From NCBI GenBank assembly GCA_002269645.1, contig NIVC01001340.1, forward strand, positions 323,919 to 387,918: 64,000 nucleotides of DNA, given 5' to 3'. Below the pieces are notes generated by a model. It saw nothing but the letters and a program-made list of their open reading frames with translations, was not told the origin of the DNA and searched no databases. A program made the translations under genes and the position numbers. Numbering within the stretch: the first letter of the stretch is position 1; each line of letters starts with the position of its first letter. The stretch is from Macrostomum lignano (Eukaryota). Of this stretch, positions 29,979 through 63,588 are shown piece after piece.

Positions 29979-30034
29979 GGCTGCAGCTGCTGCTGATGGT
30001 TGAATGCAAGCAATACTGGATCAGTTTGCAGTCC

Positions 30035-35820: not shown

Positions 35821-35882
35821 TCAGTGGACCTCCGATCATCACCATGGAAACAAAGAGTCTCTCAGTTGGTCGCTGCTCAGCC

Positions 35883-39803: not shown

Positions 39804-40101
39804 CATACATGCGCAACAGTCGGCCGAGTCGGCCGATCCGGCCGACCGATTTGGCGGCCAATCAAGGAAGTCGCAAAAATGCCCACCCAAAAAATAACCT
39901 GAAGAGTAGTACTAAGTAGCTGACGAGGCATTTTAGGTTAATAAAACAGTCATAGTTACTCCTGCCGTTTACCCAAAGTTGCGTTAATTTTGCTTTCGGG
40001 TTTTTTTATATGTAAGTCGCATTTTTGGCCAAAAACTACGTCGCATTTTTGTTAAAACTAAGTCGCACGGCTGACCGAATTTTGGAGGTTGCACATGTAT
40101 G
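39804..40101. mobile_element. hAT-type MITE (298 bp)
   Basis: TIR catacatg(c/t)gcaac with a perfect 8-bp TSD actattca (39796-39803 and 40102-40109). Confidence 0.88.
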
Positions 40102-40464
40102 ACTATTCAATTTATAATTTATATAATTATACATCTTTTCTCTGAACCATCAGATTCAACATACATTTATAGATAGATAGAATTAGGAATTTTAGTTTAT
40201 TTCAGTTTTACACTTTTACTGATTAATTTTCTTCTTTTTATCTACTATCTATACTTTTAAAAAAAATTAATGGCATTATGAAAACATAATAAACAATAAA
40301 TCAAATAAATTTTGGTTTTTAACATTACAAAAACATAAATCATAAAAGCATAGGGGGGGGGGCTATCTATAACTGTAGGAGGGCTTGGAGGTGTTGGAAG
40401 GAACAGACAGTGCTCTGACATGAGGAAAATCACTTTTAAATTATTCTCTGCTTGCGTTTGAATC

Positions 40465-40643
40465 CAGGGGTGGATTCAGAGGGGGGCAAGGGGGGCGGCC
40501 CCCCCTCAGCCGCGGCCAAAAAAATGTTGATCATACTTTTTGGCCCGCTACTATGCCAGGTCTATTTTCCAATATGGGGTTGCAGTGCTTGGTATAACTT
40601 GGCCGTTGGCCCCCTCCTCAAAAAATTTCTGGATCCGCGCCTG
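40465..40643. mobile_element. hAT-type MITE (179 bp)
   Basis: Imperfect TIR caggggtggattcag / ctggatccgcgcctg with a perfect 8-bp TSD tttgaatc. Confidence 0.88.
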
Positions 40644-42869
40644 TTTGAATCAGTGCCAGAATTTCCGGGAGTCAAAGTCAATTAGAACAAACTGCCGGTG
40701 CTATGGAAGCTCGGGCTGCTGACTTCATCAAGCTCAGTGTGAGGGTAGCTGTGGTCGTGGCGGAGTGGTTGAGTTTCATGTCCTTTTAAATGCCGGCCAG
40801 ACAGGATTACTCAAAAGCTGAAGAGAAAACAAATGATTTATTCAATACTTAGTAGAATTTTCGGATGTGTTCCTTTTAGTAGGTCACTGCTTCCACCACG
40901 ATAATTCGCGGGAAAATATCCTAAGACTTGCATGGTACGTTAGCTCGTACACTCGAACTAGTCTATATAAGAACTCTTCCTAATTTAGATCGTTGAGATT
41001 GAAGTGCTTTCCGAGCTGCAGGGTCACGAATTGTATCTAGGACATTGATTTCAGTCGGCCCAACGAAAGCGCGCACATGTATTTTACGGCTGAATTTATT
41101 GAAGTTATATCAACGTCACGGCAAGTTAAGATTATAATTGTAACATAATGGGCTGCAGTTGGAATTAAGGTGAAGCTAGCTGAAGTCGACCATGCAACAA
41201 GGATCAGATATAAATCAGGCTTATGTACATATTTATGCAGCTGTAACTGCATGTAACATGTTGGGGACCTCGGGAATCGGGATATTAAGGAAAGGGGTGG
41301 TTCCACGATCGAGTCTGGCCAATAAGGCGGGCGAGCGCAGACTTTTTATAGACTTTCATGAGCCACCAGCAGGTGGGAAAAGGGTTTACACCTTGGTCAT
41401 GGGATCTTTTTAGCGAGTGAAACGCGTGGGACCACCCAGAAGGGCCAATGAAAACAAAGGAGAAAACAAAATTGAAGGAGTGGATGCGCGCGCCTTGAGT
41501 GGAGAAAAGAATTTTCACTTGGAGAATTTTCACACGGAAGAAAAATTATTTGAATGGTAGGAGCGTAGTAGGTTACATATTTTACTACGCGTAAAATTTA
41601 TCGTTACACACCGCGATCGTGTGGCAGAAGTTACACCCAGTGGGGGGGCCACAGCCTTGCACAGTATAAAGGGGCCTCGATCGTTTTATTCATTCAATTT
41701 TAATTCAGTCACTATAAATTTAAATGTGAAAGTATTTCCAAATACTAAAAATGGTCTGTCGGTAGGTATGTGGGTATATGGGTATGTGATCGATTTTAGC
41801 CAAAATGGCTGGACCGATTTTCTGTCCTATACTCGCACAATAATATTCGTATACTCGTAGATTAGAAAGAAAACTTAAGTAGAAACTTGTAAAACAAGAC
41901 TGCTGGCTGCATTCTTTCGTAGTTACGAATGTGCATGCTCCTGAGTTGGAAGTATCATTATGCTGAGTCGAGCAGTAAAATGTCCTAGAATGCCAATGCA
42001 AATATGCCAATTCGCAGACAGGCAAACATGGACGACATGTATATATGTTCTAAAGTGTTTTGATACTCGTACTGTCTAAAATTATTGAAAGAAATTATCC
42101 TATTTCTTGTAATGTCACATTACTGTATACCACCGGTACTCGTACAATTTACATGTATGCATACACATTGCATGCACAGTATACATACTGTATGGTACCG
42201 TGCATATGCAATTCTACCTTCAACCACAAAAGCACTTGCTCATATAATTTACCATTCATTGGTGAAACGGTCTCGTACAGTACCAAGGACTACTAGACGA
42301 AGTGTTCCTAGTGGTCCTTGTACAGTACATGTAGGCTAATTGCATTATTGTGTATCCATGCACACTCTGTATACCTATATAAGCAGGTCAAGAAATCATA
42401 ACCTGGTAGAGAGGCGAGAGAGAGAGAGAGAGAGAAGACAGAGAGAGAGAGAGAGAGAGAGATGGAGAGAGAGAGTTGAGAGTGTGTAGAGAGGCGAGAG
42501 TGGGCGAGAGGTGAGAGTCGACAATTCATACAATTTTTTAACGGTGGAGAGAGGCGACTGAACATGGGTAATACGTGGTAATTAAAACACTGGGTCTAAC
42601 CCCTGATAAGGACGAGTGGATGGGGTATATGATGGGTCATGGGTAAGGTTATCGTTATGGCTTTCTTACCATATATATAAAAGGAGAGTTAGATTCGGTT
42701 GATTCTCGTCATTGACAGAACCAGTACGCGACAGTTAAGTTTGGTTATCTAAAATTAATTTGTCTGTTTGTCGTACTCTGTCCTATCCGGTGGTAAGCAG
42801 TTTTTCTGTTCCAGTACCTGCTATTCGACTAAATCTGTATTAATGAAGTATTAAAAAAAATTCGAAAAC

Positions 42870-43740
42870 CATCGACGACCTGGCGTCCTAGTAACTACGT
42901 AACGGTGCGAGCATGCTAGCACTAAACGAGCGAACTCAAGCGCAGCGTGTGCGAGAGACGACGAAGAGTTAAAACGGAGGAAAACGTTCTAGCAGGAGCG
43001 GGAGGCCCCTGCGGCGGGGCGGGAGAGGGCGCGCCACAGACGGCCTGTGGACACGACGGAACCGGACCGCCTCTTGACCGCTAGGATGAAGTCGGTCGAC
43101 GCGAGAACCCTTCGGAAGACACAATCGCGTCCGGCGGGGGATCTAGAGGTCGACTGCCACTGGACGAGACGGCGATGTAGCGCGTGCGTGCGGACCATTC
43201 GTCCGAGGCCAGGAAGAGGTCGGAGGCTAGGATGCAGGTGCGGCAGAGCAAAGACGTGGTTCGGTGGCCGCGGGGGGAGGGTCGCTTCTGAAGCACGTCG
43301 ACCGGGAGGCGCCTCGGTTTGCAGCTGAAGGATAGCGAGCGCCCGGACGGACAGCCGAAGTAGACCGACGACCTTCGACCGGGAAGGTTTCCGGTTGGTC
43401 AAGCCCAGCTACGGCGTACAGCAGGAAGACGGTGGACAAGCTTCTCAGTGGCGAGACGTGATCCACCAGAGTGGACGTGGACAGTGGTCGGTCCCAACTC
43501 AGGGACCGACCACTGCGGCGAGAAACCGATGCGGCGCCTCCGCTCGAGAGTCGTTCCGTCAAGTAGTCGACGGAAACACGCACAGACCGACGCACGCTGT
43601 AAGGTCGACGCCCAAAAAGGCCGGTTTCGTAGGCCGCACCCCCCCGTCGAAGACGGTAGTTTAGCCGAACAGTCTTAGACTGTAAGCCGGGGAACCTCCG
43701 ACCTCTATCCTGCGACAAGAGACGATGAAAGATGGTCGAG
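42870..43740 (+). mobile_element. (complemented block) Degenerate tyrosine-recombinase retroelement fragment (DIRS/Ngaro-like)
   Basis: Complement reads GLAENWRSYFSQLRSWEAFC, LLCRYIAH..SFSSLRSYVHAVSFLH, FVQLALRGAKR, FSGQSIRRGG, SESDIRPLGGWR*DAVLCY, with frameshifts and stops. IIDALPRS upstream resembles an RNase H end. Confidence 0.8.
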
Positions 43741-44340
43741 ATGGGACAGCGCGGCGGTCGCCGCGAGGTGAAGAAAATACCGAAGCGTCGACGTTCGACG
43801 TAGGTAGGTTAAGACGAAAGGTACGAAAATCAGGAAGAGGAAGGGAAGTAATCTCAACTCTAGGCGAAAGAGCCGGCGGCGGTCAAAAAGGCGTTGGTGA
43901 AACGAAACGAACCGAGGAAGGCCGCACAAATCGTATTTCAAAGCGGATTTGTGTAAATCTGTCCGTAAATGTGTTTAGCCTTCGCACGAAGCCTTCATAG
44001 CCTTCAGCTAGAGAAAACAATTATAAGTATCGATCGAAGATTTTTGCCGAGTAGTCTTTTTTATGAGCAAAACTGGTTTACTTTCACCGTGTTTCGTCTG
44101 TAAGGATGACGTCATTTGGTCGCAGTAATTTTGCTACATGTCGTCGAGTAATTCCTTGTCGGGAGGAAGATTTTTAAGACATTGACGCGGTTTTGGAGTG
44201 AATAAAGTTAACCTGCCACCGTCGCGGCGGTTACCGTCTGTAACGTCTGTTAACACTGCGCTTACTCGATTTTATCTATTTATGCTCATCGTCGTCTTAC
44301 GCCGCGAGAGGCGTAAGGTGTCGTGGCTATGGCTCGGCTT

Positions 44341-45430
44341 TACCTTCGAGAAACCTCTTAGAATTGTCGCTAACGTCGTCAAGACTACGTCTTGAAGCCG
44401 GAACTACTTTGACTTGGCCTCTAGGACTCTCTGTAAGCCAAGCCTTTGTGTTCTTTTTAAAACGCTATGGATGTCTTAGGAAGATTGCAATTATCCGACA
44501 AGTCGTAGTTACTCTACCGTAAGAGTGGCGAAGTGAAACGTACACTTTACCCGTTTCAGTTTTAACAGTTTAACAAGTAAGTTTGGGCTCGACTGCAGCT
44601 CGTCATTGCTCGTCAGTTGCTTTGTGACCGCTCAGTGGAGATATATGACGTAGTGTAATACCGGTTGTGGTTTCAACACTCGTATGAGTAGTTTCGTGTT
44701 CGACTGTAGTTAGAAGTTCTTCAGCTACCGACGAGTGGAGATATGTAACGTAGTGTTTTACCAGTGGTGGTTCAACACTCGAATGAGTAGTTTCGTGTTC
44801 GACTGCAGTTAGAAGTTCTTTTACAAGTACCGAGAAGTGAAGAGATGTAACGTAGTGTTTTACCAGTGGTAATTCAACACTCGAGTGAGTAGCTTCTTCT
44901 TCAACTGCAGTTAGAAGTTGCTTTGTGACCGCTCAGTGGAGAGATGTAACGTAGTGTAAAACCAGTGGTGGTTCAACATGCGCGTGAGTAGTTTCGTGTT
45001 CGACTGCAGTTAGAAGTTGCTTTGTGACCGCTCAGTGGAGAGATGTAACGTAGTGTTTTACCAGTGGTGGTTCAACACTCGAGTGAGTAGTTCCGTGTTC
45101 GACTGCAGTTAGAAGTTGCTTTGTGACCGCTCAGTGGAGAGATGTAACGTAGTGTAATACCGGTTGTGGTTCAACACTCGTATGAGTAGTTTCGTGTTCG
45201 ACTGCAGTTAGAAGTTCTTCAGCTACCGACGAGTGGAGAGATGTACCGTAGTGTATTACCGGTAATGGTTCAACACTCGAGTGAGTAATTTCGTGTTCGG
45301 ATGCAGTTAGAAGTTCATTTGTGACCGCTCAGTGGAGAGATGTAACGTAATGTCTTACCAGTGGTGGTTCAACACTCGTGTGAGTAGTTTCGTGTCCGAC
45401 TGCAGTTACAATGACCTCACGACGGGATTC
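44341..45430 (+). pseudogene. (complemented block) Ankyrin-repeat ORF, about 9 repeats, with stops and frameshifts
   Basis: Complement: MEALWRILT..., FSPLHFACEMGKVKIVKLFI, then 99-bp units encoding NTGESPLYIASQNGHHQVVSSLIKAQADVNLQ. TAA near 44605 and 44870 and indels in the first repeats. Confidence 0.85.
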
Positions 45431-45495
45431 GATGTATTTATTCAGTTAATTGGGAAGATCTTCACGTACAAAGATGGTTTGTTGACTGTAAATTC

Positions 45496-47622
45496 TACGT
45501 CAGGCTAGCTTAGTCTCGACTCGCTCGTCGACGTGAGTCGTGACCTCGTCAGTCCGAAGTGGCTTAGGGCTCGGCGTAACGTCTCGCGTCGACGACTACG
45601 GGACGTCGTCTAATATTCTTCACCTGGTTTGTTACTACTGAATTAAAAACAGCAGCCGTCGATGAGTCTTCCGACCCCGTTGTCGGACTGCTGTGACCTG
45701 CCGTCTTGACTGCGGTTAAGGCTGTAACTACACTACGTCAACTAAGGGCCGGCTCTTATGGTGGTCTCTCCGGACACGCTCACGCTACCTCGAGGCCTCG
45801 TCGTTCTCAACCACTTGCCCGTGTAAGTCACGAATCCTAAGCCACTCAAGAGAAAACCCCTCACTCTACCAGACACAAGACAATCAAGACAACACTAAAG
45901 ATCTCTAAGACCGTCACATCTGCAAACGAAAGACACACGTTTCGTAACCACGTCTTTAATAGCGATTTACGTACCAGGGTACGACATGCGAGTAATAAGT
46001 TGCGAAGCTTCAGTAATAAATTCCGATGATATTATGTAAGTACTCTGTTATACAGTTATACATCCAACTGTTACTAATTAAAAATACTCACCGCTTCGTG
46101 TGATGGTATTAACGGTTGGATGGTAACATTGTGCTATATTAGTACATAATTTAAGGTATCAGATACCGGTACAGAGTAGAGTGCATCTGTTACCTGTACC
46201 GGTATGTTTTTTGCCATATAATTTACATAAACATTGGCTTAGCAAAAATGTCGGAGGTTAGGACGAAAACGTTGTGGGCCTAAGTGTGACTCCGGTCGTG
46301 ACCTGTTACAGAGGCGTACGGCAGAGACGGCGATGGGCGGGTAGCGCGGCGACGACGGTTTGGCGCAGAGGTTGTAGGGGGTAGGGCAGAACCTCCGGGA
46401 GGCCTTCCACGAGTGGAGGCGGAGTAACGGGACGGTGCACCACGTGCGTCGGAGAGGACTAGCTGTCCCACTTCTCGAGGCGCACTCGTGGTCGAAGGAC
46501 CTCTTGGCCTACGACGCTTCAGAGAGATGGGACGTTCCAGTTGACAAGCAGTGTGAGTTCATGGACCAGTTCTTCCAGTAGACAGTGTTCTTACCGAAGT
46601 TAGTCGTTCCGAACTTCAGGATGGTGCACTTCTGGTAGTGGAAGGCTTACCACCTGCTCTGCGGCCAGCTCGTCACCTTCTTCCTCTTGGAGCACTCAGA
46701 GTGCTCTGTCAGCGACGTCTACGACGAGCTGACACACCTCTTCTCGGCTCTCGTCCTGTCTGTTTGTGGACTGTGTGGACTGGCTAGAGCCCCAGCGTAG
46801 TACTTAGTAAAGAAAGAGTCGCTACACCGGTAGATGGAGTTCCCACGCCTGTTCCTCTCTCGCCTGGTCGTAAACCTGCCGTAGTACTCGTGTGACTCTT
46901 GTCATTAACTAGCCGACGGGGTCGACGACGTCGTCAAGTAGCCGTCAGAGTCTGGACACTCGCTGAGTCCGTGTAAGATGAAGGTGGGCAAGGTTTAGGC
47001 CGGCTTATACTCAGGCGACGGGGAGTGATTCAGGTCACGAGAGCTCATGATAGTCTAGATGCTGCACCACTCTCTCACAGACCACGCAGAGAGAACGTCA
47101 CTGACGTCGGGCGCTAGAGTCCTCAGCGAGTGTCTCGACTAACGGTCTGACGGTCTGACGCGGGAGAGTCGTGCCCTCCGAGAGTCTCGCGACCGAACGG
47201 ACTTCAAGCCGCTGGCTCCTTGACGTCTCTCTCAGCACTCGAGCACGAGTTCAGTGAGCCACTCGTCTCCGTATCGAACCAGAGCACTCTTCAGCCGCTG
47301 ACTTCGCTGACTCCTCAAGCACTACGCCGTAGACTCCTCGGCGCTGAGCCGCACCTTCAAAACGAAAGCCAACCTGGTCGCTGGCTTTGAGCTTAAGAAC
47401 CGTCCTCGAGATTCCCGCACGAAAGGGGAGGCCAACAGTCCGTCATTGATAAAGATGTACTTGAAGCTGCGAGACGACACCCGAGACGCCGAGCTCGACG
47501 CCTGACTAGCTCTTCGAGCGCGAGTCCTGACCTAGGCCCTACACCGACTCTCTCTCCTGAGCCTACTCGTCCTCGACGTCCAACGGCAAAAAATAAGAAG
47601 CTTAGGCCTCGTCAAAGACATT
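45496..47622 (+). CDS. (complemented block) Mab-21/cGAS-like nucleotidyltransferase (cGLR-type), 2 exons
   Basis: Complement: exon about 45500-45842 has VVGSYSEG...NSDIDVM and ends G|gtgag. Exon 46253-47622 (ttttacag| acceptor, phase 1) is open for 455 codons with ALDNV, LRVSTSFLE, LKSYHVKT, EQWKKENL, MNHFF. The frame stays open after the TAA until 47721. Start codon unclear. Confidence 0.85.
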
Positions 47623-49589
47623 TATAAATTCTTCGACCTCTACTTCTCTCGTTTAGAAGAGCTGACCGACTACTCCTCTGAAGCTTTTATAGTTCGTTTA
47701 TTGGTGTCCTTAAAACACATTTTTTGCTTTCGAGAGAATGAACACTCGTCCATTAAATAAAAAAAAATTAAAATAGAATTTAACAAATTGAACTAAAAAT
47801 TCACGGCTCTTAATTGTGCTGACGGGTCTCACGTGATGTCCATTTGTTTTAGTAAATGGCTTTAAACGAGAGTTTAGATAACTTCTTACTGATCGTCACG
47901 TCCTATAGTCGATAAGTTATGCTAAAAGTTATATGTCTGTTTCAGCTTTAGAGGCTCTTGAAATCGAGTATTCGCATAAGATGAAAGTCAAAAAATAATT
48001 CTTAAATTTATTATTAATATTGTTATCGTCAGTAACATCAACTTAATCAACAGTTCGTTACGGAAAACGGGCCTAAATAACTTTATCACGTAAGAAACTT
48101 AAGCAGAGATAAATCATTACACTATCTTACCAATTTAATGACAAACGAAACGGTTTCTTTTTTTATTTTACACGACTTGAGCGGCATCCCTCGCACAAAT
48201 CTCTCCGGCCGAGTTGGAGTTCGTCATCGATTAATAGCGATAAGAGTCCGGACGTGAAGTAAGACGGTCGGAAAGACGTCAGATGTCCGCTCGCAACTCG
48301 TCGGAGACGCCAACGGCCCCTGTTACTTGTTACGACACGAGCCAGAACGACAAACTAACTTACGAAACTTACGACAAACTCATCACTCGACCTAATCTCA
48401 AAGTTAGATCGGTCTGAGCGCCAAAATAACAGAGACTCCGTGTCGCGCGCCAACCCACTAAGTTCTCTGGTCACAACCCAAACAACCGCTTGAGTTTCGT
48501 CAAAAGAGAATCGTGAGCGTCGCGCTATTAGGACGTCGACGAGAAGAAATCTACGTCACAGATGTCCTGTTTAAATTCTTCGACCCCAAAGATATTTTGC
48601 GCAATGGGTAGTTTTAATCTCTACTACTTTACGTAGACGTCTGAGAATTCAATTATTTATAAGCGTGCTCCCGACGTGCGTGGGACCGCGTTGCGGAAGA
48701 CGCTGTAGCACGGAGTCGGTCGCGACTGCCGCTAAGACGGGTAAGGCAACTGAGGACTCGTGTACGTTTGTAGAGTTATGACACTCGTCCGTGAGTGAGT
48801 ATGTGTCCGAGTGTGTCCCACGGGACTTGAAAGATTAGCTGTCCGTACATGTGGGATACGTAAACCCCAACCCAGGTCATACCACGTGAACATCCACGAG
48901 TCCTAGACCCGCACCGGTAGTTGTCGGTTAAAGTTATTAGCTTTAAAATTAGAACTCAGCTAGCTAAGAGAGTAATTCGGACCAGGAGAGAGCGCGGAAG
49001 ATGGAAGAAAAAATGAGAGAGGGGGTCAGAGTAGGTCTTCTCTTACTTTTATTCAAACCGAACACATTTTATAATAACGTCTCTCCGATGCGTTCTCTCG
49101 AATCACAGCGGCTTCGCCGTCGTTTTACGCTTTAGACTCCCGAGATATATAAAATATAGATAAGATAGATCCTGATATCTTAGGAAGTTAAGAGTTGTCG
49201 TCATATTGTTCCAAAGTAAAGGATAATAGAAGACGAATGTACTGTCTTTCTGAAAATTTGTGTTACCGGAGATTTTCGGGATAACACTCACACTCCGTGT
49301 TACGTTTCGTTACCTACGAAACTTGGGGGAGGGGTTTCGTAAACGACGCTCAGAGAAGACACGGTGCGCAAGCGTCCGACGACCGAGCCGGGAGTTTGAA
49401 GTCGAAGCAATAACAGGAAAAACCCGTAACTCCGGCCGACCAGACCTCGACCCGACGAACCTACCGACGCCAGCCCTGCTCATCTCCACCGACGAAAAAG
49501 GCGAGGCCACACTCGACGCGAAGAGGTTAAGAAATTCGAACGTATAGACGAGGCTAAGGACAGTTAGTTGACGAGTGATCTGACGAATG

Positions 49590-49930
49590 GTGAGAGACTT
49601 GACGAAGGCGAGAGACTTGACGAAGGTGAGAGACTTGACGAAGGTGAGAGATTTGACGAAGGTGAGAGACTTGACGAAGGTGAGAGACTTGACGAAGGTG
49701 AGAGACTTGACGAAGGCGAGAGACTTGACGAAGGCGAGAGACTTGACGAAGGTGAGAGACTTGACGAAGGTGAGAGATTTGACGAAGGTGAGAGATTTGA
49801 CGAAGGTGAGAGACTTGACGAAGGTGAGAGACTTGACGAAGGCGAGAGACTTGACGAAGGTGAGAGACTTGACGAAGGCGAGAGACTTGACGAAGGCGAG
49901 AGACTTGACGAAGGCGAGAGACTTGACGAC
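49590..49930. repeat. 18-bp tandem repeat (gacgaaggtgagagactt as written)
   Basis: Directly visible; inside the complemented block. Confidence 0.95.
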
Positions 49931-50539
49931 AGGTTTGTCCACTGTGACTAGGACTCGTGTGAATGTTCGCGCGGATACGACAATAATGGTTTCAACTCGG
50001 ATTTGTCTTTTAATAAACCGTATACTTTATTTTCGATGTATGAGAGATGTGTGATGAGAACATCTCTCCTCAAGTCATCCGTTCATCGCTTTAAATTAAA
50101 GCTTTAATAAAACAAACCGTTTTAACACTTTTAATCCATTATTATTAATTCTCGTTAAATAATCGAAATGGAGCCGGTTATAAACTAAAAAACTACCCGC
50201 GGGAACAGAGGACCATATATACCAGGAAAACAATTCAATTATTACTTCAAACGTTACTTGTTGACCATTTGTACTACTTCCTGACAATTAGAAAGACAGG
50301 TAAATATCGTCAGCAACGGCAGTTCACACCTGTAACATTATCGAGTATAGGTTAAGCGAGAAGGCGAATTCTCGGTACGACTGAAAGTAGCTGTGTAGGG
50401 CAAGCCACAAGGTGTTGAGGCTGTCGTCAACCACTGGCGGAAACGAAAGATGTAGCCGTTTGAACGACTCGGGTTGTCCAAGTGTGGACGTGAAAGACTT
50501 TATCCTTATTTCTCTCGAGCCGTCGATTTTCGACTTTTC

Positions 50540-51360
50540 GAGAAGGGAGAAGAGAGAAGAGTAGAGAGGAGAGAAGATAGGGAGAAAGGAGAGGGGAGAA
50601 GAGAGGGGAGAAGAGAGGGGAGAAGAGAGGGAGAAGAGGAGGAGAAGAGAGGGGAAAAGAGGGGGAGAAGAGAAGGGAGAAGAGGGGAGAAGAGAGGGGA
50701 GAAGAGAGGGGAGAAGAGGGGAGAAGAGAAGGGAAAAGAGGGGGAGCAGAGGAGGAGAAGAGAAGGGAAAAGAGGGGGAGAAGAGAAGGGAGAAGAGGGG
50801 AGAAGAGAGGGGAGAAGAGAGGGGAGAAGAGGGGGGAGAAGAGGGGAGAAGAGAAGGGAGAAGAGGGGGAGAAGAGAGGGAGAAGAGGGGAGAAGAGGGG
50901 AGAAGAGGGGAGAAGAGGGGGGAGAAGAGGGGAGAAGAGAAGGGAGAAGAGGGGGGAGAAGAGAGGGGAGAAGAGGGGAGAAGAGGGGAGAAGAGGGGAG
51001 AAGAGAAGGGAGAAGAGGGGGAGAAGAGAGGGGAGAAGAGGGGAGAAGAGAGGGGAGAAGAGAGGGGAGAAGAGGGGAGAAGAGAAGGGAGAAGAGGGGG
51101 GAGCAGAGGAGGAGAAGAGAAGGGAAAAGAGGGGGAGAAAAGAGGGCAGAAGAGGGGAGAAGAGCGGGAGAAGAGGAGGAGAAGAGAGGAGAGAAGAGAG
51201 AAGGGAGAGAAAAGAGGGGAGAAGAGAGAGGTGATAGAATAAAGAAGAGAGGAGAGAGGGGAGAAAGAGAAGAAGGTAAAAGAGGAAGTAAGAGAAGAGT
51301 GAACAGAAGAGAGAAGGGTAGAGGGTGCAGAGGAGAGAAGAGAGTAGAGAGTAAAAGAAA
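50540..51360. repeat. Purine-only low-complexity tract (as written)
   Basis: gagaagagggga-type units. Confidence 0.93.
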
Positions 51361-51484
51361 AGGACGAGGAAAGGTGAGAGTAGACGGGGCCCAGTTACTC
51401 GTCGATCCTAAGAAAGAGACCAGGAGCTCTATTTTTCTCAAACGACTGGGAATATTTTGGTTCTTTCTAAGAAGACAATTCGTA

Positions 51485-52025
51485 CTTGTAGAGAGTGACT
51501 CGTAGAGAGTGACTCGTAGAGAGTGACTCGTAGAGAGTGACTCGTAGAGAGTAATTCGTAGAGAGTGACTCGTAGAGAGTAATTCGTAGAGAGTAATTCG
51601 TAGAGAGTGACTCGTAGAGAGTGATTCGTAGAGAGTGACTCGTAGAGAGTAATTCGTAGAGAGTAATTCGTAGAGAGTAATTCGTAGAGAGTGACTCGTA
51701 GAGAGTGACTCGTAGAGAGTGATTCGTAGAGAGTAATTCGTAGAGAGTAATTCGTAGAGAGTGACTCGTAGAGAGTGACTCGTAGAGAGTGATTCGTAGA
51801 GAGTGACTCGTAGAGAGTAATTCGTAGAGAGTGACTCGTAGAGAGTAATTCGTAGAGAGTGACTCGTAGAGAGTGACTCGTAGAGAGTGACTTGTAGAGA
51901 GTAATTCGTAGAGAGTGATTCGTAGAGAGTGACTCGTAGAGAGTGACTCGTAGAGAGTGACTCGTAGAGAGTGACTCGTAGAGAGTGACTCGTAGAGAGT
52001 GACTTGTAGAGAGTAACGCGTAGAG
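51485..52025. repeat. 14-bp tandem repeat (gtagagagtgactc as written)
   Basis: Directly visible. Confidence 0.95.
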
Positions 52026-52085
52026 AATAGAAGATTCTACCTTTTAAAATGTCTGAGCCGATGTACTTTTGTTCAAGTCTACGTG

Positions 52086-55000
52086 AAACTGAATTGACTG
52101 AATCGACGTCCCACCAGGCATCTGTGTCGCCCCTCCGCTCCCAGCGGGTAAGGCGATCGGGGACTTCCGGGCGTCTGTCCGTCTCCGCACCCCGGCCAGT
52201 CCCACCAGGCGGCCAGGCAGGACGTCGCACTAGAAGGCAACCCTTCTTTGACCGAGCAGATCAGCGGGCTTCCTTGACCTACTCGGCACCCTACGACAGC
52301 CCGACCGTCTGGAGCAGTTACCTGCCCAAGCCGGGCTCCATCGCATCGGCCAGAGACAATTTCTTTCCCGTCACTGTCTGTTTCACGACTCGTAGAAGAA
52401 ACAGCGTGAGCGTTTTCCCCGTTTAAAGCGAGAGCTCCAGCGGAGCCTCCTTCGTCACGGACCGCTCCATCGGTACCGGCCATTCCCAGTACTGTTCCCG
52501 AGCTTATAGGAAGGCTAAGACCAAGTCTTCCTACAAAGACTCGGACACTCTGCCCGTTCCTTGGCGCCGTGCTCTGACGGCCGTCAAAACCCACGGGCGG
52601 GTAGACAGGGACACCTCCCTCAGTCGGGTCAGCAGCTAGACTGCTAACTACTGACAGTTCCCGTATCCCTGGTCCCCCCGTCCCGGCTTCTTTCTCGGTC
52701 TCGGCGGGGAGAACCGCTCCCACAGACGGTCGAGCAAGGGGCCTTTGGGACGCACGGGACCCTAGGTGAAGTCGGACTGTCATAACGAAGACCGGTCCTC
52801 CAACTCGACGGCCCGCGTCAGCCGCTGACAGGCCCTCAAGCAACACCACACCGTTTCCCGGACATTCCGGCGAACCGACAGTCTCACCTACTGTTATCAG
52901 AAAGGAGAGCATTGGAACCGCAAGTCGAGACGTCGCGTTCTCGACTACCGTTCCTGAAGCAAGACCTTCTGACACCTCTCAGATGGTCACACGACCCGTA
53001 CGCACCGTTAATGCGCCGGCAACTACTACTACGTCTGGGGTTTCGGCCGCGCTGGCAGAAACTACCTAGGCAGGCACATCGTTACCTGGAGGACCTTTAA
53101 GGTCACCAGTAACCGTCGTAGGGATCTCCCCTACCACTGGAACATCGCGACTTTCTCCAACTCTCACGCCCCAAGCGGCAGTCTATCCTGCACCTCGGGC
53201 GGCGACAGAGAGTTCAGGAACTCCGTCTCCAGTCGCACCCCGTCTTCGAACGCGAATCGGTACCGGGATACCCCGACCTAAGCTTACGGTCGCAGTCGAT
53301 CTGCCGCCCGTCAGAATCGGCGAAGGGACGCCTGTTTCTACAGGTCGCCTCCTTACAACTCCTTCCGCAACTCCGGTAGCATCCCTCGTCTGCCTCCCCG
53401 CGAGTACTAGCACGCTGTTCGCGCGGGAACGCGAGAGGACTCTCGGAGATCTGTCCAGAAATAGACGTCCCGCGATCGGGTCTAGTCCGGCGGTATGCTC
53501 TATCGCCCGGATTGGTAACGTCACATCTAGGTGGTCTCCGCGAACCCCCACTCGGGGGTCCACCACGGCTGTCGGGACGCGTTAACGCGCTCCTGACGCT
53601 TCCGGAAAAACCGAAAACAAACTTGCACCCCACTGGTCAAGTCGGACACCAGGTCCCATTATGGGTCTGTAAATCAGACGAACGTCTTCCCCTAAAGGGA
53701 AGGCATTTCGCACTCGCCGGCTTAGACGGTGAACCAGGACGACCACTTGTACTAGCGACGCCAGAATCAGAGTCTCTCGGAATTCGGTGTCGCCAGGCGG
53801 GTAACGAGTCGTCGCATCTACTTCAAGACTTCTTCCAGGGACTCCCATAGTCCCCTGCCTGGTCTACGGTGGCGCCACTGTAGCAGGCGTATAGGTTGAA
53901 AGTCTTACCCCAGTCCGGCTTGTAGGGCCTCCTCGAGTAGCTACTGGTATAAGGTCTCTTGACCTCTGTCGTGGGGTGGAACGCCCGATGGAAACGTCTG
54001 CCCCTGGCAGGAGACCATCGGGTCGTCTGACCGCCACCGGCACGCTACCGACTAGTACATGTACTAGGTAGACCACTCTACACTCACGCAAACGGAGAGT
54101 GTTTCTCGAGAAGCCTTGCGGAGTTTCTCCTGCAATAGCTTCCGCGGTTACTATAGGTCCTTCTAGGGGTCTCGTTTCGGTAATGGTTCGTGCCGGAAGA
54201 GCTCAAATAGCTGGTCCTGCACGTCGCGCGAAAGTCACCTCGCTGGGCGGGCTTTTCGCACGACCAAGAGCGACTCTCCAAACAAGAAGTCGAGTTGTCT
54301 CTCTTCCGCGGTTTCGTGGTCAGAGAGGTAGTCGAACTGGTCCCTCCTCCAGTTCGACTAGCCAGACTTCCTAAACTATCTTACCATCAGGCTCGCCGGA
54401 CCGAATCCCTATTTCTAGTGGAAACGGAGCCAGGTTCGGACACCCTGTATTGGTTCGCACTACGTACGGGCTTCTTCCGACGTTTCAAACGCGTCCTTCG
54501 GACCCGTAAATTGGCGGAGAGAATCTTCCCGGCCATGTTACGGCAGCCCAGGACCCCGAAACTTTCCGAACTTCCTTAAACGGCGAGAGTGTTACGCCAG
54601 GAGGCACTACTATCTCCGTCGGTCGCGCACTGGAGGGAGGCTCACTAGGCCTCACCAGACCAATCGACCGAGCAACCCCTTTTTGCGTCACTCGTAATGT
54701 AGTTCGCAAAGGGGACCCAACAGGCACCTGCATGGCAGCCACGCAAACTGGCTCCTCTCGAATCTGTAAAACAGGTCGCACTCGCGAAAGTGTTGAGACC
54801 TCCACCCCGCACTCGGGAGATCGAGGAGTGTCATAACAGCGGTAAAAACTCGGAAACGTAAGGATTGGAAGGAAAATTTGAGTACTTAACGAAGTACTAT
54901 CCGCCAAACCAGACGTCCCGAGAATCAAAATCAACGAGACGCCACCTCAGAGAATCGGGACGCTGCCTCCAACGGCTCGAGCCCTAAGGTGGTGCCGCGG

Positions 55001-57840
55001 CTAAAAAAGGGAAATATCCGAAAATTTCCCGTCCTGCGGAGTTTCCGCCGCCAATCGCAGAGACAGTTTTGTCAGCGCGTGAGTAGGCGGAGAGCCGTGC
55101 TGCACTAGCACCTACCAACCGGTCCTCTGGCTACCTTAAGGAAGTCCCGCTCGGGCTTCCAAAGGGTTAGGCATAAAGACCGCAAGGCAGAGGTGCATTG
55201 TGCTCAACGCGATGCGCGCCGGTAATCCAACTTCCTCTACTTGAACACTAGGCTCTCACTCCTGTGACCTTCGTGGGCGGTGCGAGGTTATGAGACCATC
55301 TCAGACCCGCAACGCTCGCATCGCAGCTAGTGGAGGCTGGTGGCAGGCAACAGTTTCCATCCCCACCTGGGTCTCAACGTCTTGAGCTCCCAGCATCTCC
55401 GTTGCATCCGATCCTCCAGAAGCGGAGAGACTAATTACGGTCACGACGGGGTCACTCACACCACCCGCAACTACAGCGGCCGTTGGTACTCGAGCATCAA
55501 AAACCGTCTCGTCTCGAGATGGTCGCATCGCTCCCGAGACCCCTGCTGGCGTCGTAGCGGACCATCCATTTGGCTCCGTTACTCCCACCAGAAGGGTCCT
55601 TCTTCCAGGAGCCTAACCTACTGCGTCTACAGGGACAACCTGTCCAGGCTAGACTCGGTGCGTGACTCGCAAAACGAGCGTTTCTACGTTCGAGACCCTC
55701 CGACCAACCGGAGCGCTCCCATTCATATTTTTGTTAACATCGGTCGTCCCCGCAAGACTCCGAATGGAGACTCTCAGGTCCCAAGGACCTGCTCCTACTC
55801 GGGGCCGAACAGCTCGAGCCGCATTGCGTATTCCAACTGGCTCCGACGCTGCGTCACGACGTCTAATTAGACGTCCGTTACCTAAGGAACCAGCGACTAG
55901 TAATAGTGCGTCAACCCCTTAGCAACTCGTCCAGTAGGAGGAGGAAAAGTCACCACCCACTGGGCGTCTGGAGGTACCCTCAAAGTCGCAGGAGTCGTCA
56001 ATCCCACCGACACCTCAGGAGGCGCCTGCACTCGGGTCGCACCTGCAATGGCAGCGGAGGGGACGCACGAAGCCACGACAGTGACGGGCAGGGGAGACGG
56101 AGCAGCCAGTCCAGCTACGCCCACCGCGGTCGGAGGACCACTCAGTGTCTGAGCTTGGTCAGCCAGCCTCGGAGGGGCGAATCTCAGACCGGAAGACCGA
56201 CAACCCCACCTCGCGCTCTTCGCGCCCGGGCGAGTGCTACGCGTGCTTCCAAGAACCGGACCAGGTCGCGCGCGACCTAGTCCGGCCTGGAGGCCCACGA
56301 GGACCGCCCAGACGCTAACGCTAAAGGCCAAAGTCGTCGCGCTTGACGGAATGGCCCGTATCCTAGCCGGCAAACGGAGCCGAAGAAACGGCCTCCTCGG
56401 ACCCGGGGTCAAGGCCAAAGCCTTCGAAACCGTAAGAACCGAAGTAGTCGAAAGGCGAGGAGCGTTGCCTCCTACCAGTCGACTCAGTCTGGTTATACTT
56501 AACACCTGAATCCGCCGTTCGCGAATCGGGTCAGTAGTCTCTCGGGATCCTAGTGGCATCGGGGGAAGAGGAACGCCCTTCACCGCACCACATCCTCGGG
56601 CAACTGGAGTTCCAGCCCCACGTCGAAATCGTTATAAACGGATTCGACTAGAGGCCTGAATTACCGTGACGGCCGGCCCTAGGTCTGCGCTTTCGCGACC
56701 CAGAAGACAGCAAGCGGGAGCGACCGCTTCTGCTCGAACGGCTCGAAGAACCCGGTCAAGTCGAAACCGTCTTCGAGCGCATCTAACGCCGACGAGAGGA
56801 GGCTCGACGTGGTCTACTTCTACGTCGGCAGCCAGAACCGTCTGAACTGGTGCGAGTGTCCCGCCGGGCGGTCCTCGACCAGCTACTCGCGTCGTAGCTA
56901 CCACGCGGTCCGTGACAGCTCGAGCAGCCGGCACTCCAGGACGAGAAGGGGCTTCTGCTACTGGCGGCCAACCTCGAACTGGAAACTCCGCATCAACCAC
57001 CGCCGCCAAGGGCTTCCGGGCCGGCGCGAACATCGTCTATATGACCCACCGAGTGGTCGCCCCCAACATAGGACCCCCCGTCCCCAACGACACCAAGGAA
57101 AGCCGGGTTGTCGTCGGAGCGGGAGGGATCCAAGGGGGAGGCGGCCACCGGCCGGGCGTCATGGGGCATCAGCGGCAGCGGCGAGCAACGCCGCAACCAA
57201 CGCCCACGCAGCCCGAAGTCGCCTCCCGGGCCAACGCGCACGCCCGTACAGTGGCCGGCTCGGCCGCCGTTCGGGTAGACGGGGGCCACCCCGCCGCGAC
57301 CACGGTCTCAGTGGCCGGCCTCAACGGCCCCGGGGCCGAAGTCGCCCCAACTTTCTCCGCCTACTGCGGTATCGACTTTCGCCCTTCCTCACTCGACTCA
57401 GTGTTTTTTTCTCCTTTCTTCTTTTTCTTTTCCTGGCGATCGCTGGCCTGTTGGGGGGCCGGAAGGTCGGGTAGCCGTGCCAGTTTGTGGAATCCGTATT
57501 CCCCCATGCAATTCGTCATGGTGCCGGACGTCCGACCGTTCGGTCTGGGCGTATGGGTTTAAACCGGCTTCGGTGACCTACCCAGCGGTCGCAGCCTCGG
57601 GTCAGACAGGTCGTCGGGATCCCAGACGGAACTTGTGTGCGCCCCTGCTCATGGGACCCAGCTGAACACTTTGTCGCACTCCCCCCCAGACGCCGACGGT
57701 CGCCGTTTATCGCCCACGTCTGGAGGGAGAGGTCGGAACTGGACGACTTCTATCCCCGTCCGCACTTCGTAGCGTCTGGCATCGGGTATCCGGACCAGAC
57801 AGAGTATGAAGTGACCGCACGACTTATGTGGAAGCGCACG
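52086..57840 (-). mobile_element. (complemented block) Full-length RNase H-containing LINE, LOA-like clade, 5755 bp
   Basis: Reading the given bases right to left: ORF1 57371-55905 (488 aa) and ORF2 55902-52198 (1234 aa). ORF2 has APE (QINLQHC, VQEPW, AGDINAHH, SDH), RT (FLDIIGAFD, PQGGVLSP, YADD, WGLTPK), RNase H (YTDGS, SDSQAA, WIPGH, GNELAD) and CCHC (CPFCE..EDAQHFVCHC). 12-bp TSD caagtctacgtg at 52074-52085 and 57841-57852. Confidence 0.92.
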
Positions 57841-58291
57841 CAAGTCTACGTGTCCATGGAAAAGTTAACATAAGTTACAAATGTCTTACAACGTGTTCAG
57901 TCGACCACGTGTCAAACGTGATCCATTGTCAGTTAAATAAGATATATACGTTAGCTGTTATTTTTGCGTAGAGACACGTTATTTTTGCGTTCCGTGTTCC
58001 TACAAAAAAGAAAAGAACAAGTTTGAGTAGTTTTTCACAGGTCAATTCGACTATATCAACTACGACGTATAGGTATTTATCTAAATGACGTAGATGAGCA
58101 ACTACCATTTCAGGTTTATTTATCTAAAACATCTATTTGTTCAAAGAATTTTTATATGTGATCTATCGTGGACTCGATTTCACCTGGGGGATGTTCGTGT
58201 GTTTCCATGGTCACATACACAGGATCATAACCGATATTTTGTCATTCCGAGCATTCCGAGACAAACTTTTTTTAAGGAGTTCAAATTGCTT

Positions 58292-61200
58292 TACACGGCA
58301 AATTTAAGTTAGAGTAGCTGCCAGCGAAAAAATTAGCAAGAAAACACACCTTGGCATTCAATGAGCGTTTAGGAAAACGTTTGTATGATCCACACCGTTA
58401 CCGTTTGAAACTAATGTTACCAAGGAATTAGCGTTAGACGATGTCCAGCCGCCATGACCCAGGTACGTACATGTTAAGGTGTGGATGATATTAGTACTGT
58501 CGTCTCGGAGCCTGCCCTGCATGACGCTGTGCAAGAAAAGGACCTCTCTCAGTCGGACGCTAGGCTTTAAGGTTGAGAAACGACTGTCCTCCAACGCCGG
58601 AGGGTAAATTATTGCTGCTGACGAGGGCCTTTAGAAAGAGATGTTCACGGTAGATTAATAAGTTCTGCTTGTGCTTTCGCTCCCTACAGCAATCCGACAG
58701 ACATGCTAACCATCCATCCATCGGTGTAATGTTAAAAAGACCCTGTTTGAATTTGTTTTTGGCAACTAAACCAACAAGCACTGTAGATTAAATAATATGG
58801 GATGCTTTGTTTAATAATTGTGGATTGAAAAAATTTAGCTGTGCCTCGATATTTTGCTGAGATTATATAGCTCATTTTTGGGGGGGGTTGCTAAGACTAC
58901 GCTGGAATTGCTGAAATGCCATCGATAAATGTAGAATGCTGAGATTCCCAAGGCATTCCTAAGGCATTCCCTAGGGATTTCCGTGAAGAATTTATTAGGA
59001 TTTCACTGGCTCAAGGGGGAATTCTGAGCTGCCAAGGATTAGAGATCAATCTCTAAGAGTTTTTAATCTTACTACTTCTTCCGTTGTCTACCCATGTGGG
59101 GGGCTAAGATTACTAGTCTAATTCTACTTAGTAGTTTTGGCGGGAGAGTTATTGAATTTACCTTGAGTTAACGATTGCCATTCGAAATTCCTGCCCACAG
59201 GAACAATCTATTTAACTACGGTCAAGCTGGATACTATGGGGATTCGGACATTGTCAACTTCGGCGGCAGGTTCGGTGAAATTGCCAATCCAGTCGTTATA
59301 GACATGCCCTACTGGAATCCGGTATGCAATCTTAGTACTTTTAGTTTGTATAGCTACCTACAGTACAATATATCTGTGACCAGAACGCCACATCTCAACA
59401 TTTCTAACATTAACAGGGCAGCATACAAATAACGGTTGTCGCGATGGACAAAGACGAATTTTACGACGACCATATGGACCATTTCTACGCAAGTCTACCG
59501 GCTCGGGCTGACTCAGTAAGGAGAAACATGGACATCTACAGTTCTCCGAGGCACCACAGGCTATCAATTACCTATTGGTACACCTGCCACAGCCATTACT
59601 ACGGACTGGACTGTAACACACTTTGCAAGCCTCGCAATGACTCTACAGGCCACTATACCTGCGATTCTAATGGCAACAAAGTTTGCATGTCAGGTGAGCT
59701 TCGAGGTCACTACTAATATGTGTCTTTTAGTTTGTTGACTGCTGCTGAAATGTTTGCATTTTTAATTGTAATACGTTTACAGACTGGATGGGCACCAACT
59801 GCACCCGACTGATTCCGTGTCTCGAAAGCCCGTGCTACAACGGAGGCACCTGTTCCAATGTCGGCGACATTGCCAACTGCACCTGCACGCCAAACTTCAA
59901 CGGAAGCCGCTGCGAGACGGATGTCAACGAATGCGAACTTGATCTGCCGACCTGCTCGAATGGAGGAACGTGCCTAAACACCTATGGAGGATTCGATTGT
60001 GTCTGCCCGGAAAACTCTACTGGCAGTCGTTGTGAGGATCTGAACGAATGCGCTCTAGACATTCCACCGTGCCAGAACAATGGCACCTGCATCAACACTT
60101 TTGGCGGATTCAACTGCAGCTGCCCGCCGAACTTTAATGGCAGTCTTTGTGAGACTGACGTGAACGAGTGCGACACAGGAACCTCACTCTGTCTGAACGG
60201 AGGTACGTGTATTAACACCTTTGGCGGATTCAACTGCAACTGTCCTTCGGGTTTTACTGGCAGCCTCTGCGGCTCGGACGTGAACGAGTGTGATTCAGGC
60301 ACTTTCCCGTGTCAGAATGGAGGCACCTGTCTAAACAAATTCGGTGCATTCAACTGCAGTTGTCCCCCAAACTTTAATGGCAGTCTTTGTGAGACTGACG
60401 TGGACGAGTGCGACACAGGAACTTCACTCTGTCTGAACGGAGGTACCTGTATTAACACCTTTGGCGGATTCAACTGCAACTGTCCTTCGGGCTTTACTGG
60501 AAGCCTCTGCGGCTGGGACGTGAACGAGTGTGATTCAGGCACTTCCCCGTGTCATAATGGAGGCACCTGTCTGAACACATTCGGTGCATTCAACTGCAGT
60601 TGTCCGCCAAACTTCACAGGCGCCCGTTGTGAGGCAGATGTGAATGAGTGTGAGAATGGGACTTCGCTGTGTCTGAACGGAGGCACTTGTCAAAACACAT
60701 TCGGCGGGTTCAGTTGTCTCTGTCCAGGAAACTTTGTCGGCAGTCGCTGCGAGGCAGACGCTGACGAGTGCGAGATATCGGCCTCACCTTGCGGCATCGG
60801 CGGCACCTGCCTGAACACCTTCGGCGGATTCAACTGCATCTGTGCCGTGGGATTAACAGGCAGCCGATGCGAGATCGATGTAGACGAGTGCGAGGGCAAG
60901 TCCGACTGCGCGAGCGGCAGCACCTGCGTGAACGAATTTGGCAGCTACAGATGCCAGTGTCCCGATGGATTCAGCGGACGACTTTGCGAGACAGCAGAGA
61001 AACCTGCGGAGCCGAATCAGCAGACCCTCATCATTGCCTTAGCAACTGTCGGTGGTGTCATTCTGATCGTAGCGTTCATACTGACTGTCGCCGGCATCAC
61101 GAACAGCGAACGTATTTCACAGGCAGTCAGGTATTAACACTGAACATTCTGTTAACATTCTTTGAGGCCGTAAACAGATAAACCTAACTTTCTCAACTCC

Positions 61201-61377
61201 GTGATTAGCAGGTCCCGTCGAGGCAGTACAGTCGAGCCAGATATGGTGGACAATCATACATATAATACGGAGTAAGCATTGATTTCTTTGATTTAGTAAT
61301 CGAAGGTAATTTGTCGACTCGAAGCGTCACCTTTTACATTGACAGCGATTCTACATTCAAACCGATGAGGTATTGAT
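58292..61377 (+). CDS. Delta-like Notch ligand (signal peptide, C2/MNNL-like domain, DSL, 10 EGF, TM, short tail)
   Basis: Exon 1 58292-58354 and most of exon 2 58446-58603 are in the complemented block. Then 59201-59321, 59417-59693, 59783-61130, about 61214-61271 and about 61346-61377. DSL motif [38 protein letters not shown], Ca-binding EGFs, [23 protein letters not shown]. Confidence 0.88.
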
Positions 61378-62089
61378 GTCGCCAGCTGCCTCAGAGAAGG
61401 CTACACCTGATCTCAGGTTTTTGACCAATTGCGACTTTTTTCTGAACTCGAGACTCTGCTGGCATATTCTCAACTTATTCCAGTATTAATAAGCATCCCT
61501 GTAAATGCAACCCACTTTGTATATCATGTGAAAACGTATTTTGCTATAAATTGGTACACTTATCCATCTAAATATTCTAGTATTAAAAATCTGCTTTATT
61601 TTTCTGTATAGCTAATCGAACAATGATAAATTAATAACTTCCCAAATTTCTAATGTACAAGGTAATCACAACGTTGATCATGGATGCAATGGATGCGTCA
61701 GACCACCTTTATCCTAGTACATTGTAGTATCTTGACGACATTTACGAGTATTGATAAGAAATCTTTTTTGATACAATTTATTTCATACAGATCAGTTTCC
61801 TTATTTCGGACTTGTGAGAAAATAAATTAAAGCCTGGTTTATAATTTAAATCCAACGGATATATTTAGTTGTTTACTGAGTCGTCTGCTGCTAATTAAAA
61901 TTAGCTAGGTAAGTAAATTTGTGATGCAAATAATGCAAATCTATGTACTTTACGCTATGTACTTATTGCATCCTGATAATTATTTTATATCTAGAAAATA
62001 GAGTTAATACACAATTAAAAAACTATGACTACGGACCCAAATGCATAATAATAATTAGTAATTGATGACACCCGCCCGAATAGGCAGAT

Positions 62090-62720: not shown

Positions 62721-63588
62721 TAACCGAATATAACCTCCGCATTATATTTACGAGTAATATGGATTAGGAGACGGTGTAACAAATGCAACATTGAAATGTG
62801 GATATGTATAATAGTTAAATAGAGCTAGACATTCGCGCACGATGAAATATTCAACTGAATTGAAAATGCTATACATATATAAAACCTTAATTATTAGATT
62901 TAAGTAAAAGTTTAAAAAAATGTTTCAAAATTTTGATGCTCTAGTCTAGTGAATTATTTAAAGCACCTCTGTTAAAAATCTGGTACGAGCGACAAGAAAG
63001 CAGTGTGGCACTTTTAATATATCAGCAAAACGTATTTAAAATTTGCTTTATTTTTAAGTTGTTTTTTTAAGTAAAATTTGTCTTTACAAGCGACCAAATC
63101 GTTTCACTCCAAACAACAGAAAATGGCAAATTTTTGCAGGACAATGCAACAATGCTTAATACTCGTGTACAGTACGCTAGATTTAAATGATGATGTTGTT
63201 ACATGGTGCATCTACATAGAAGATTCGGAGCAAGCATATGTACATGGCGTAGCATGCAAGTGCAAATGCCTCCACCGAAATTTATGAAATTTACTGGTAT
63301 ATATCTGATGAATAAATATCTTCGAACTCCGGAGGACATTGGCAAGGGACATTTCCTAGTCATTGACTTCATTACCTAAGAGGATTTAATTTTAATTATG
63401 TATGTCAAGCACGAAAATCCTTGTACAAACGTTTAATCCACAGGTTACATAGCAGTCCTGTTAAGCGTTCAACTCAGAGCAGTTATGCTGCGTATGCTTC
63501 GTTATCGAATCTGGAATTGAAATTCATTTATAGAAGAGCAATGGTCAAACTTATAGACTCCGGAATGCAACAACTGACACATTCTTAC

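Follow-up and report, generated by a model that had tools for sequence, protein, structure and literature searches.

Genes and features of the locus

A gene with ankyrin repeats and a Mab-21 domain, a non-LTR retrotransposon and the first coding exon of a Delta-like gene lie, from left to right, in one block of the window, by which we mean the whole stretch of Macrostomum lignano DNA that was analyzed (64,000 nucleotides of contig NIVC01001340.1). All three are hidden in the letters as written and emerge once each letter of the block is exchanged for its complement and the order is left unchanged (Table 1). The original prediction had counted four recognizable elements or genes here; three protein-coding units stood (the retrotransposon contributing ORF1 and ORF2), along with a short dispersed repeat.

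Table 1. Coordinates of the block, its junctions and the features in and next to it (positions in the window)
Feature	Position	Strand	Basis or remark
Left-junction interval	41230..42573	.	Between as-written and complemented homology to NIVC01000092.1
Complemented block	42250..58590	.	Composition, base-level comparison with public contigs, change point; end exact, start approximate
Upstream GC-rich region of ankyrin + Mab-21 gene	42574..44340	+	Syntenic with NIVC01000092.1 only after complementing
Ankyrin + Mab-21 host gene	44341..47622	+	Reads left to right after complementing; homology, Pfam, splice sites
Ankyrin-repeat array, 99-nt tandem repeat	44615-45408	+	Ank_2 7e-60
Nucleotidyltransferase-core exon	~45476-45844	+	Exon mapping
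GT-AG intron of Mab-21 gene	45845-46251	+	Splice sites in complemented letters
Mab-21 C-terminal exon	46252-47619, stop 47620-47622	+	Mab-21_C
Short dispersed repeat	49324..49527	.	Complemented only; two matches in NIVC01001460.1, 88-90%
18-nt-unit tandem array	49581..49934	.	Repeat listing
Purine-rich tandem array	50540..51273	.	Repeat listing
14-nt-unit tandem array	51484..52026	.	Repeat listing
Target-site duplication, element 3' side, 12 nt	52074..52085	.	Identical to 57841-57852
Non-LTR (LINE-type) retrotransposon, 5755 nt	52086..57840	-	ORFs, domains, target-site duplication
Element ORF2, 1234 aa from first Met	52201..55902	-	0 internal stops
RNase H domain of ORF2	~52705-53091	-	RNase_H 3.4e-14
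Reverse transcriptase domain of ORF2	~53659-54411	-	RVT_1 1.5e-31, above Pfam cut-off
AP-type endonuclease domain of ORF2	~55237-55872	-	Exo_endo_phos_2 1.4e-19, above Pfam cut-off
Element ORF1, 488 aa from first Met	55908..57371	-	0 internal stops
Target-site duplication, element 5' side, 12 nt	57841..57852	.	Identical to 52074-52085
First coding exon, Delta-like (DSL + EGF) gene	58446..58603	+	Complemented up to 58590; 58591-58603 ordinary
Right junction	58590..58591	.	Base-exact; inside coding exon, whose GT donor follows 13 nt downstream
Other exons, Delta-like gene	59202..61137	+	As written, outside block; Pfam DSL, EGF_CA

The leftmost gene is 88% identical (E = 1.3e-207) to an annotated M. 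lignano Mab-21 protein (P0001), and its N-terminus corresponds to a gene model at NIVC01000092.1 1-248(-). Its Mab-21_C domain scores 25.7 bits against a Pfam cut-off of 24.1. A GS...DID-type motif, the putative catalytic core, is visible at 45488-45862, a stretch that has no Pfam match. With a domain score above threshold and close homology, the predicted product is a member of the Mab-21/cGAS-like nucleotidyltransferase family.

The sense strand of the retrotransposon corresponds to the letters of the written plus strand read from right to left. ORF1 matched no Pfam family, whilst the C-terminus of ORF2 is Cys/His-rich and the nearest solved structures in the PDB are LINE-1 ORF2p, R2 and the TRAS1 endonuclease. 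The 3' end of the element is short and A-rich, and no long terminal repeats were present in the repeat listings. For the target-site duplication, we estimate that a 12-nt match between the two stretches searched would be expected by chance about 0.06 times. Judging from its predicted endonuclease and reverse transcriptase, its target-site duplication and its lack of long terminal repeats, the element is an APE-type non-LTR retrotransposon, and it is apparently intact, no breaks having been counted in either predicted ORF. APE-type non-LTR elements that carry RNase H are LINE-like elements of the I, Tad and Nimb-type architecture; the RNase H domain only narrows the architecture of the element and does not assign its clade. 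The retrotransposon did not give rise to the anomaly described below; it is simply carried along in the block as ordinary sequence.

The block ends within the Delta-like gene. Exons outside the block were mapped to 59202-59318, 59417-59695 and 59776-60930. A search for an orthologue to serve as an anchor gave only a paralogue with 52% identity (P0043), whose residues 15-62 match the complemented letters 58446-58586 only. ORFs of the window as written outside the block include a CFDP1-like one of 352 aa and a Delta-like one of 449 aa. Exact-product look-ups with these two, with P0061 and with two small ORFs immediately left of the junction returned no recorded protein.

Reading the block as written and complemented

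As written, the block has 10 ORFs of at least 150 aa, none with a credible Pfam family. The only two matches, to Med31 and LED_rpt, were rejected as low-complexity artefacts from ORFs built of the 18-nt array; the long spurious ORFs of the written block arise because of its three tandem arrays (49581..52026). A tblastn search with five M. lignano Mab-21/ankyrin proteins gave 0 HSPs against the written letters and 19 once they were complemented. Complementing also brought out stop-free stretches of 1244, 510 and 493 aa, and one intron defined by homology reads GTGAGT...ACAG after complementing only. The same operation applied to ordinary flanking DNA shortened the ORFs there. Rfam returned no RNA families in the whole window. 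The original prediction, that the block yields no recognizable protein in any of the six frames as written and acquires long ORFs and GT-AG introns on complementing, is thus borne out for the proteins and the ORFs and, as regards introns, for one of them.

Word usage changes in the same place. CA+TG was rarer than AC+GT in all 15 of the 1-kb bins inside the block and in 1 of 46 outside (Mann-Whitney p = 8e-9); CAG+CTG fell below GTC+GAC in every inside bin (15/15) and in 3/46 outside, and GCA+TGC below CGT+ACG in the same proportions (15/15 and 3/46). CpG depletion is mirrored, with a CG/GC count of 1240/811 inside the block and 1520/2701 outside. When a strand-symmetric Markov model was trained solely on public sequence from M. 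lignano, it favored the complemented reading in a single interval, 42406-58509 (summed log-likelihood ratio -865 nats). The flip in word usage that had been claimed for the block is therefore present for all three word comparisons in every inside bin, and it is limited to one interval. Dips in likelihood at 14-16 kb and 32-34 kb were considered as further complemented blocks and rejected as minisatellite noise; 32486-33770 aligns as written to NIVC01000092.1.

Collinearity and junctions

We compared the window with other M. lignano contigs, two of which, NIVC01000092.1 and NIVC01001460.1, are homeologous or paralogous and do not represent the same locus. NIVC01000092.1 aligns as written to window positions 26370-40946 and then, in the same direction, to the complemented letters 42574-44561 (contig positions 1926-1, 86% identity over 2028 nt). 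NIVC01001460.1 matches complemented letters only and is collinear over 45405-48950 at 72-91% identity. At about 49.5-58.4 kb the complement is suggested by protein-level and structural evidence, namely the predicted ORFs, domains and target-site duplication. Divergence is the same inside and outside the block: against the best M. lignano protein for each, identity is 88% both for the hidden Mab-21 gene and for the CFDP1/BCNT gene of the as-written flank.

The contig of the Delta-like paralogue, NIVC01001731.1 (GCA_002269645.1), proved to be a near-identical locus, which gave the exact right junction. Window positions 58430-58590 are the complement of NIVC01001731.1 22833-22673 at 161 of 161 positions, the next 30 (58591-58620) are identical to the contig as written (30/30), with an identity of about 99.7% over 58591-61200. 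The public contig runs through this point without interruption and in ordinary form. The junction in the window falls at an arbitrary place in mid-exon, in unique coding sequence of the Delta-like gene, with no gap and no N run. No comparable as-written matches were found inside the block.

At the left end, as-written homology to NIVC01000092.1 stops at 40946, with a weak match to 41229, and complemented homology begins at 42574; a sensitive blastn search against the ordinary M. lignano sequences compared found no match in between. The window carries about 1.1-1.3 kb here that is absent from the homeologous contig, so homology cannot place the left junction. Markov change points fell at 42259-42556 for k = 2-3 and drifted at k = 4-5, by a method with an error of 100-400 nt that missed the known right junction by at least 81 nt. 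A comparison of repeat pairs gave none that straddle the left junction and none that was informative. A block length of 16384 nt (start 42207) was rejected, since the best change point outscored it by 11-13 nats. The first complemented base thus lies within 41230-42573, most likely at about 42.26-42.56 kb. Coordinates of 42250-58590 had been proposed: the end is exact to the base, and the start is compatible with the results, though not proven.

DISCUSSION

Between about 42.3-42.6 kb and 58590, each letter of the window is the complement of the corresponding base in ordinary M. lignano DNA, with the left-to-right order kept. The order of positions is retained relative to both flanks, the left alignment running in the same direction and the right end continuing to the base, and the gene content is normal once the letters are complemented. 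Complementing without reversing is the same operation as reversing without complementing viewed from the opposite strand. A block reversed in place would appear inverted once complemented; the observed synteny is collinear, so the block was complemented in place. It is established biochemistry that all known DNA and RNA polymerases copy antiparallel to their template, and none is known to produce a complement of the same polarity. For this reason the block is almost certainly an in-silico artefact or a deliberate manipulation and not a property of the DNA of the animal. In such a process every letter would have been exchanged for its Watson-Crick partner (A for T, C for G and vice versa), probably by software or by hand acting on a range of coordinates once the sequence had been assembled. 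This may have happened before deposition, through a post-processing or format bug, or later, a deliberate spike-in included. An artefact of complementing without reversal had been proposed in the original prediction and agrees with every test: the full complement match at the right end, the retained order, the arbitrary mid-exon place of the right junction and genes that appear only after complementing.

An error of orientation in the deposited assembly, whereby an assembler or scaffolder complemented a contig that needed flipping and omitted to reverse it, would be the commonest faulty reverse-complement routine. The window also differs slightly from the Mlig_3_7 contigs, so its source is a different contig, haplotype or assembly, as this explanation would allow. 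However, complementing such a piece back should leave it inverted with respect to its flanks, whereas both ends are collinear. This collinearity speaks against the simplest bug in an assembler and points to an operation applied to a range of coordinates in finished sequence. In addition, contig joins usually lie elsewhere than in unique coding sequence that continues to the base with neither gap nor N run. We therefore regard an orientation bug of this kind as improbable; if a piece in the correct orientation was complemented at some later format or processing step, the case belongs with the in-place change that we favor.

Could some M. lignano individuals physically carry the block in their chromosomes, through some hitherto unknown way of copying DNA? 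If it were, 16 kb would have been copied in parallel polarity with perfect fidelity, in a manner known for no polymerase. We found no positive evidence for this. The long-read public assembly of the species is ordinary through the right junction and 100% identical after complementing, and a real event would have destroyed a Delta-like gene. Moreover, the retrotransposon ORFs are open, the Mab-21 exons read through and divergence equals that of the flanks, so any such event would have to be extremely recent as well as perfectly faithful over the whole 16 kb. Relying on biochemistry and on the public assembly of this species, we hold with high confidence that no such block exists in the physical DNA, and we consider a real block to be extraordinarily unlikely. 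Because the block has two sharp ends and a word usage of its own, conventional biology might be suspected (an inverted chromosome segment, a compositional domain with strand bias, or DNA of foreign origin), and is less probable still. An inversion, as a reverse complement, would keep strand-symmetric word counts and six-frame readability, neither of which holds, and neither a compositional domain nor DNA of foreign origin would equal the letter-for-letter complement of the species' own sequence. All three were rejected.

The in-place complement has no biological novelty, and its relevance is to quality control only. Antiparallel strands are taken for granted in six-frame translation, splice models, repeat libraries and alignment, which makes the block invisible to each of them; the claim that standard annotation is blind to it holds for the ankyrin + Mab-21 gene, the retrotransposon and the first Delta-like exon. 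This failure mode escapes ordinary pipelines, while a strand-symmetric k-mer likelihood scan detects the block in seconds. It is conceivable, although we think it rather doubtful, that the error resides in the deposited reference assembly and may recur in other parts of it, where annotation would miss the genes concerned; were the block in the deposited assembly, the record would need correction and the remaining assembly the same scan. If the block was planted as a control, its earlier detection was correct, with an exact end coordinate.

Several known systems invite comparison. The hidden element matches APE-type non-LTR retrotransposons with RNase H in having ORF1 and ORF2, in the order endonuclease, reverse transcriptase, RNase H and Cys/His region, and in its short A-rich 3' end and target-site duplication (12 nt here), but differs in that its ORF1 has no Pfam family. 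The combination of ankyrin repeats with Mab-21 is common to the hidden gene and to the M. lignano Mab-21/cGAS-like proteins P0010 and P0013; unlike the annotated proteins of this architecture, the hidden copy carries 2 in-frame stops in its ankyrin array.

A chromosomal inversion or misoriented contig resembles the block in its two sharp junctions and in disconnecting genes from their flanks, but it is readable by every tool and leaves strand-symmetric k-mers unchanged, whereas the block is unreadable as written and its k-mers are flipped. Parallel-stranded DNA duplexes made in vitro are short, synthetic and of non-Watson-Crick geometry. They pair two strands of the same polarity base by base, as in the relation between the letters of the block and ordinary DNA, yet nothing in the block points to a physical molecule.

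Also comparable are sequences that are reversed and not complemented, used as null or decoy sets for false-discovery rates in the form of a zebrafish genome (PMC5909433) and of motif matrices (PMC8920891). They belong to the same class of transformation, which leaves length, base composition and repeat structure intact and abolishes all biological signal, and it is for this reason that they serve to estimate false-discovery rates. In contrast to such decoys, the block is one internal piece of about 16 kb, set seamlessly in normal sequence with its order kept and unlabeled as a control.

Word usage and readability flip across one interval

In word counts at 2-kb and 500-nt resolution, AC+GT exceeded CA+TG and TA exceeded AT at ~42.3-58.5 kb, and the same scans showed CAG/CTG, ATG/CAT and GCA/TGC replaced by GTC/GAC, TAC/GTA and CGT/ACG. 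The ratio of CA+TG to AC+GT was flipped in 15/15 1-kb bins in the block but in only 1/46 outside (p = 8e-9), and CpG depletion was mirrored (CG/GC of 1240/811 in the block versus 1520/2701 outside). A strand-symmetric Markov model, whose training set was public M. lignano DNA only, favored complemented letters over a single interval, 42406-58509 (-865 nats). Smaller likelihood dips at 14-16 and 32-34 kb were attributed to minisatellite noise and not to further complemented DNA, because 32486-33770 matches a public contig as written.

Read without complementing, the block owes its long stop-free stretches mainly to tandem arrays, and no credible Pfam family was found in the ten ORFs of at least 150 aa searched. 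Two Pfam matches were rejected, both in ORFs built of an 18-nt minisatellite; an as-written ORF of this repeat at 49310-49942 (- strand) matched Med31 at 27.4 bits against a Pfam cut-off of 25, judged a false positive from repetitive sequence. Complementing the letters without reversal yielded stop-free stretches of 1244, 510, and 493 aa and a GT-AG intron (45845-46251), whereas ordinary flank DNA treated in the same way gave shorter ORFs. The flanks are normal as written, with a Ty3/gypsy-type pol fragment, a BCNT/CFDP1 gene, and Delta-like DSL and EGF exons. The original prediction of flipped word usage, no recognizable protein as written, and long ORFs with GT-AG introns after complementing was thus borne out.

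The block is complemented in place

Public M. lignano contigs match parts of the block in its ordinary form. The homeologous contig NIVC01000092.1 matches the window as written at 26370-40946 and then carries on with unchanged direction, but now only where 42574-44561 is complemented (86%, 2028 nt). At the other end, NIVC01001731.1 matches the complemented letters of 58430-58590 at 100% and, from the next base, the uncomplemented window (58591-61821). Base for base, the left side of this junction is complementary at 161/161 positions and the right side identical at 30/30. A paralogous locus, NIVC01001460.1, gives a collinear match at 45.4-49.0 kb to the complemented letters only. Reversal in place would make the complemented block appear inverted; since neither end does, the block is complemented in place with its order kept.

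The 493-aa complemented stretch is 88% identical to M. lignano Mab-21 proteins (E = 1.3e-207), a level that the CFDP1-like flank gene, as written, also shows with its counterpart in M. lignano; the right flank shares ~99.7% identity with NIVC01001731.1 across 2.6 kb. These matches identify the window as M. lignano DNA, of a haplotype, contig, or assembly other than those compared. The presence of near-identical contigs alongside ones with 86-90% identity fits the neopolyploidy of M. lignano (PMC10733133).

The right junction, 58590|58591, has no gap and cuts the first coding exon of a Delta-like gene 13 nt before that exon's GT donor. The left junction was bracketed to 41230-42573, and composition favors ~42.26-42.56 kb (method error 100-400 nt). 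Within this bracket, ~1.1-1.3 kb of the window is absent from NIVC01000092.1, which has ~0.5 kb between the flanking matches, and homology therefore could not place the junction. Of the predicted limits, the end at 58590 is exact and the start at 42250 is compatible with these data, though unproven.

Genes and repeats in the block and its flanks

Features of the window, with genes in the block read after complementing
Feature	Position	Reading	Details
Ty3/gypsy-type LTR retrotransposon pol fragment	1-2151	as written	RT_RNaseH, Integrase_H2C2, rve, Integrase_p58_C
Minisatellite arrays (examples)	9284-13718, 14043-15644, 20490-23395, 30037-31290, 32846-33970, 34506-35827		
Region upstream of host gene	42574-44340	complemented	syntenic with NIVC01000092.1
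ANK + Mab-21 host gene	44341-47622	complemented	
Short dispersed repeat and three tandem arrays	49.3-52.0 kb		hidden in block
Non-LTR retrotransposon	52086-57840	right to left	hidden in block
Delta-like gene, promoter region and most of first coding exon	to 58590	complemented	right end of block
Second Delta-like gene	63267-64000	- strand	right edge of window

At its N-terminus the host gene is nearly identical to an M. lignano gene model of 1594 aa on the homeologous contig; an ankyrin array encoded by a 99-nt tandem repeat (Ank_2, 7e-60) follows, and its further parts are a nucleotidyltransferase-like exon, the GT-AG intron, and a C-terminal Mab-21 exon. In the 44341-45444 part of this copy, two in-frame stops fall in the ankyrin array, and the copy may be a pseudogene or differently spliced. 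A Mab-21 protein with 41% identity to the hidden gene is labeled 'Kangiellaceae bacterium' (a MAG, on a 1065-nt contig), which suggests that eukaryotic sequence contaminated the metagenome bin.

Identical 12-nt copies of a target-site duplication border the non-LTR retrotransposon. Neither its ORF1 (488 aa) nor its ORF2 (1234 aa) showed stops or frame changes, and ORF2 has endonuclease, RT, and RNase H domains. The pol fragment runs past the window's left edge, with one reading-frame change and a 12-nt tandem array in its 3' part. One exon of the second Delta-like gene is 97.7% identical to an M. lignano Delta-like protein (P0043) and 95.6% to another protein (P0061). Minisatellite arrays with 12-42 nt units occupy ~1/3 of the window (roughly 21.9 kb, merged repeat rows summed); several occur at the same positions in NIVC01000092.1 and are thus conserved between subgenomes.

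Origin of the block

Every known polymerase copies antiparallel to its template. Together with the ordinary form seen in an independent M. lignano assembly, this makes the block an artefact or manipulation at the text level and not a real biological feature; the 161/161 complements and the collinear ends likewise support the predicted complementing without reversal. This collinearity argues against the simplest kind of orientation bug, a contig that was only complemented when it should have been flipped, since the block would then appear inverted once complemented. An operation on a coordinate range of the finished sequence fits better.

The block is useful as a quality-control case. Complement-only DNA is reverse-only DNA viewed from the other strand. 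In genomics, DNA reversed without complementing serves as a standard null control (PMC5909433, PMC8920891), which makes it plausible that the block was such a deliberate control.
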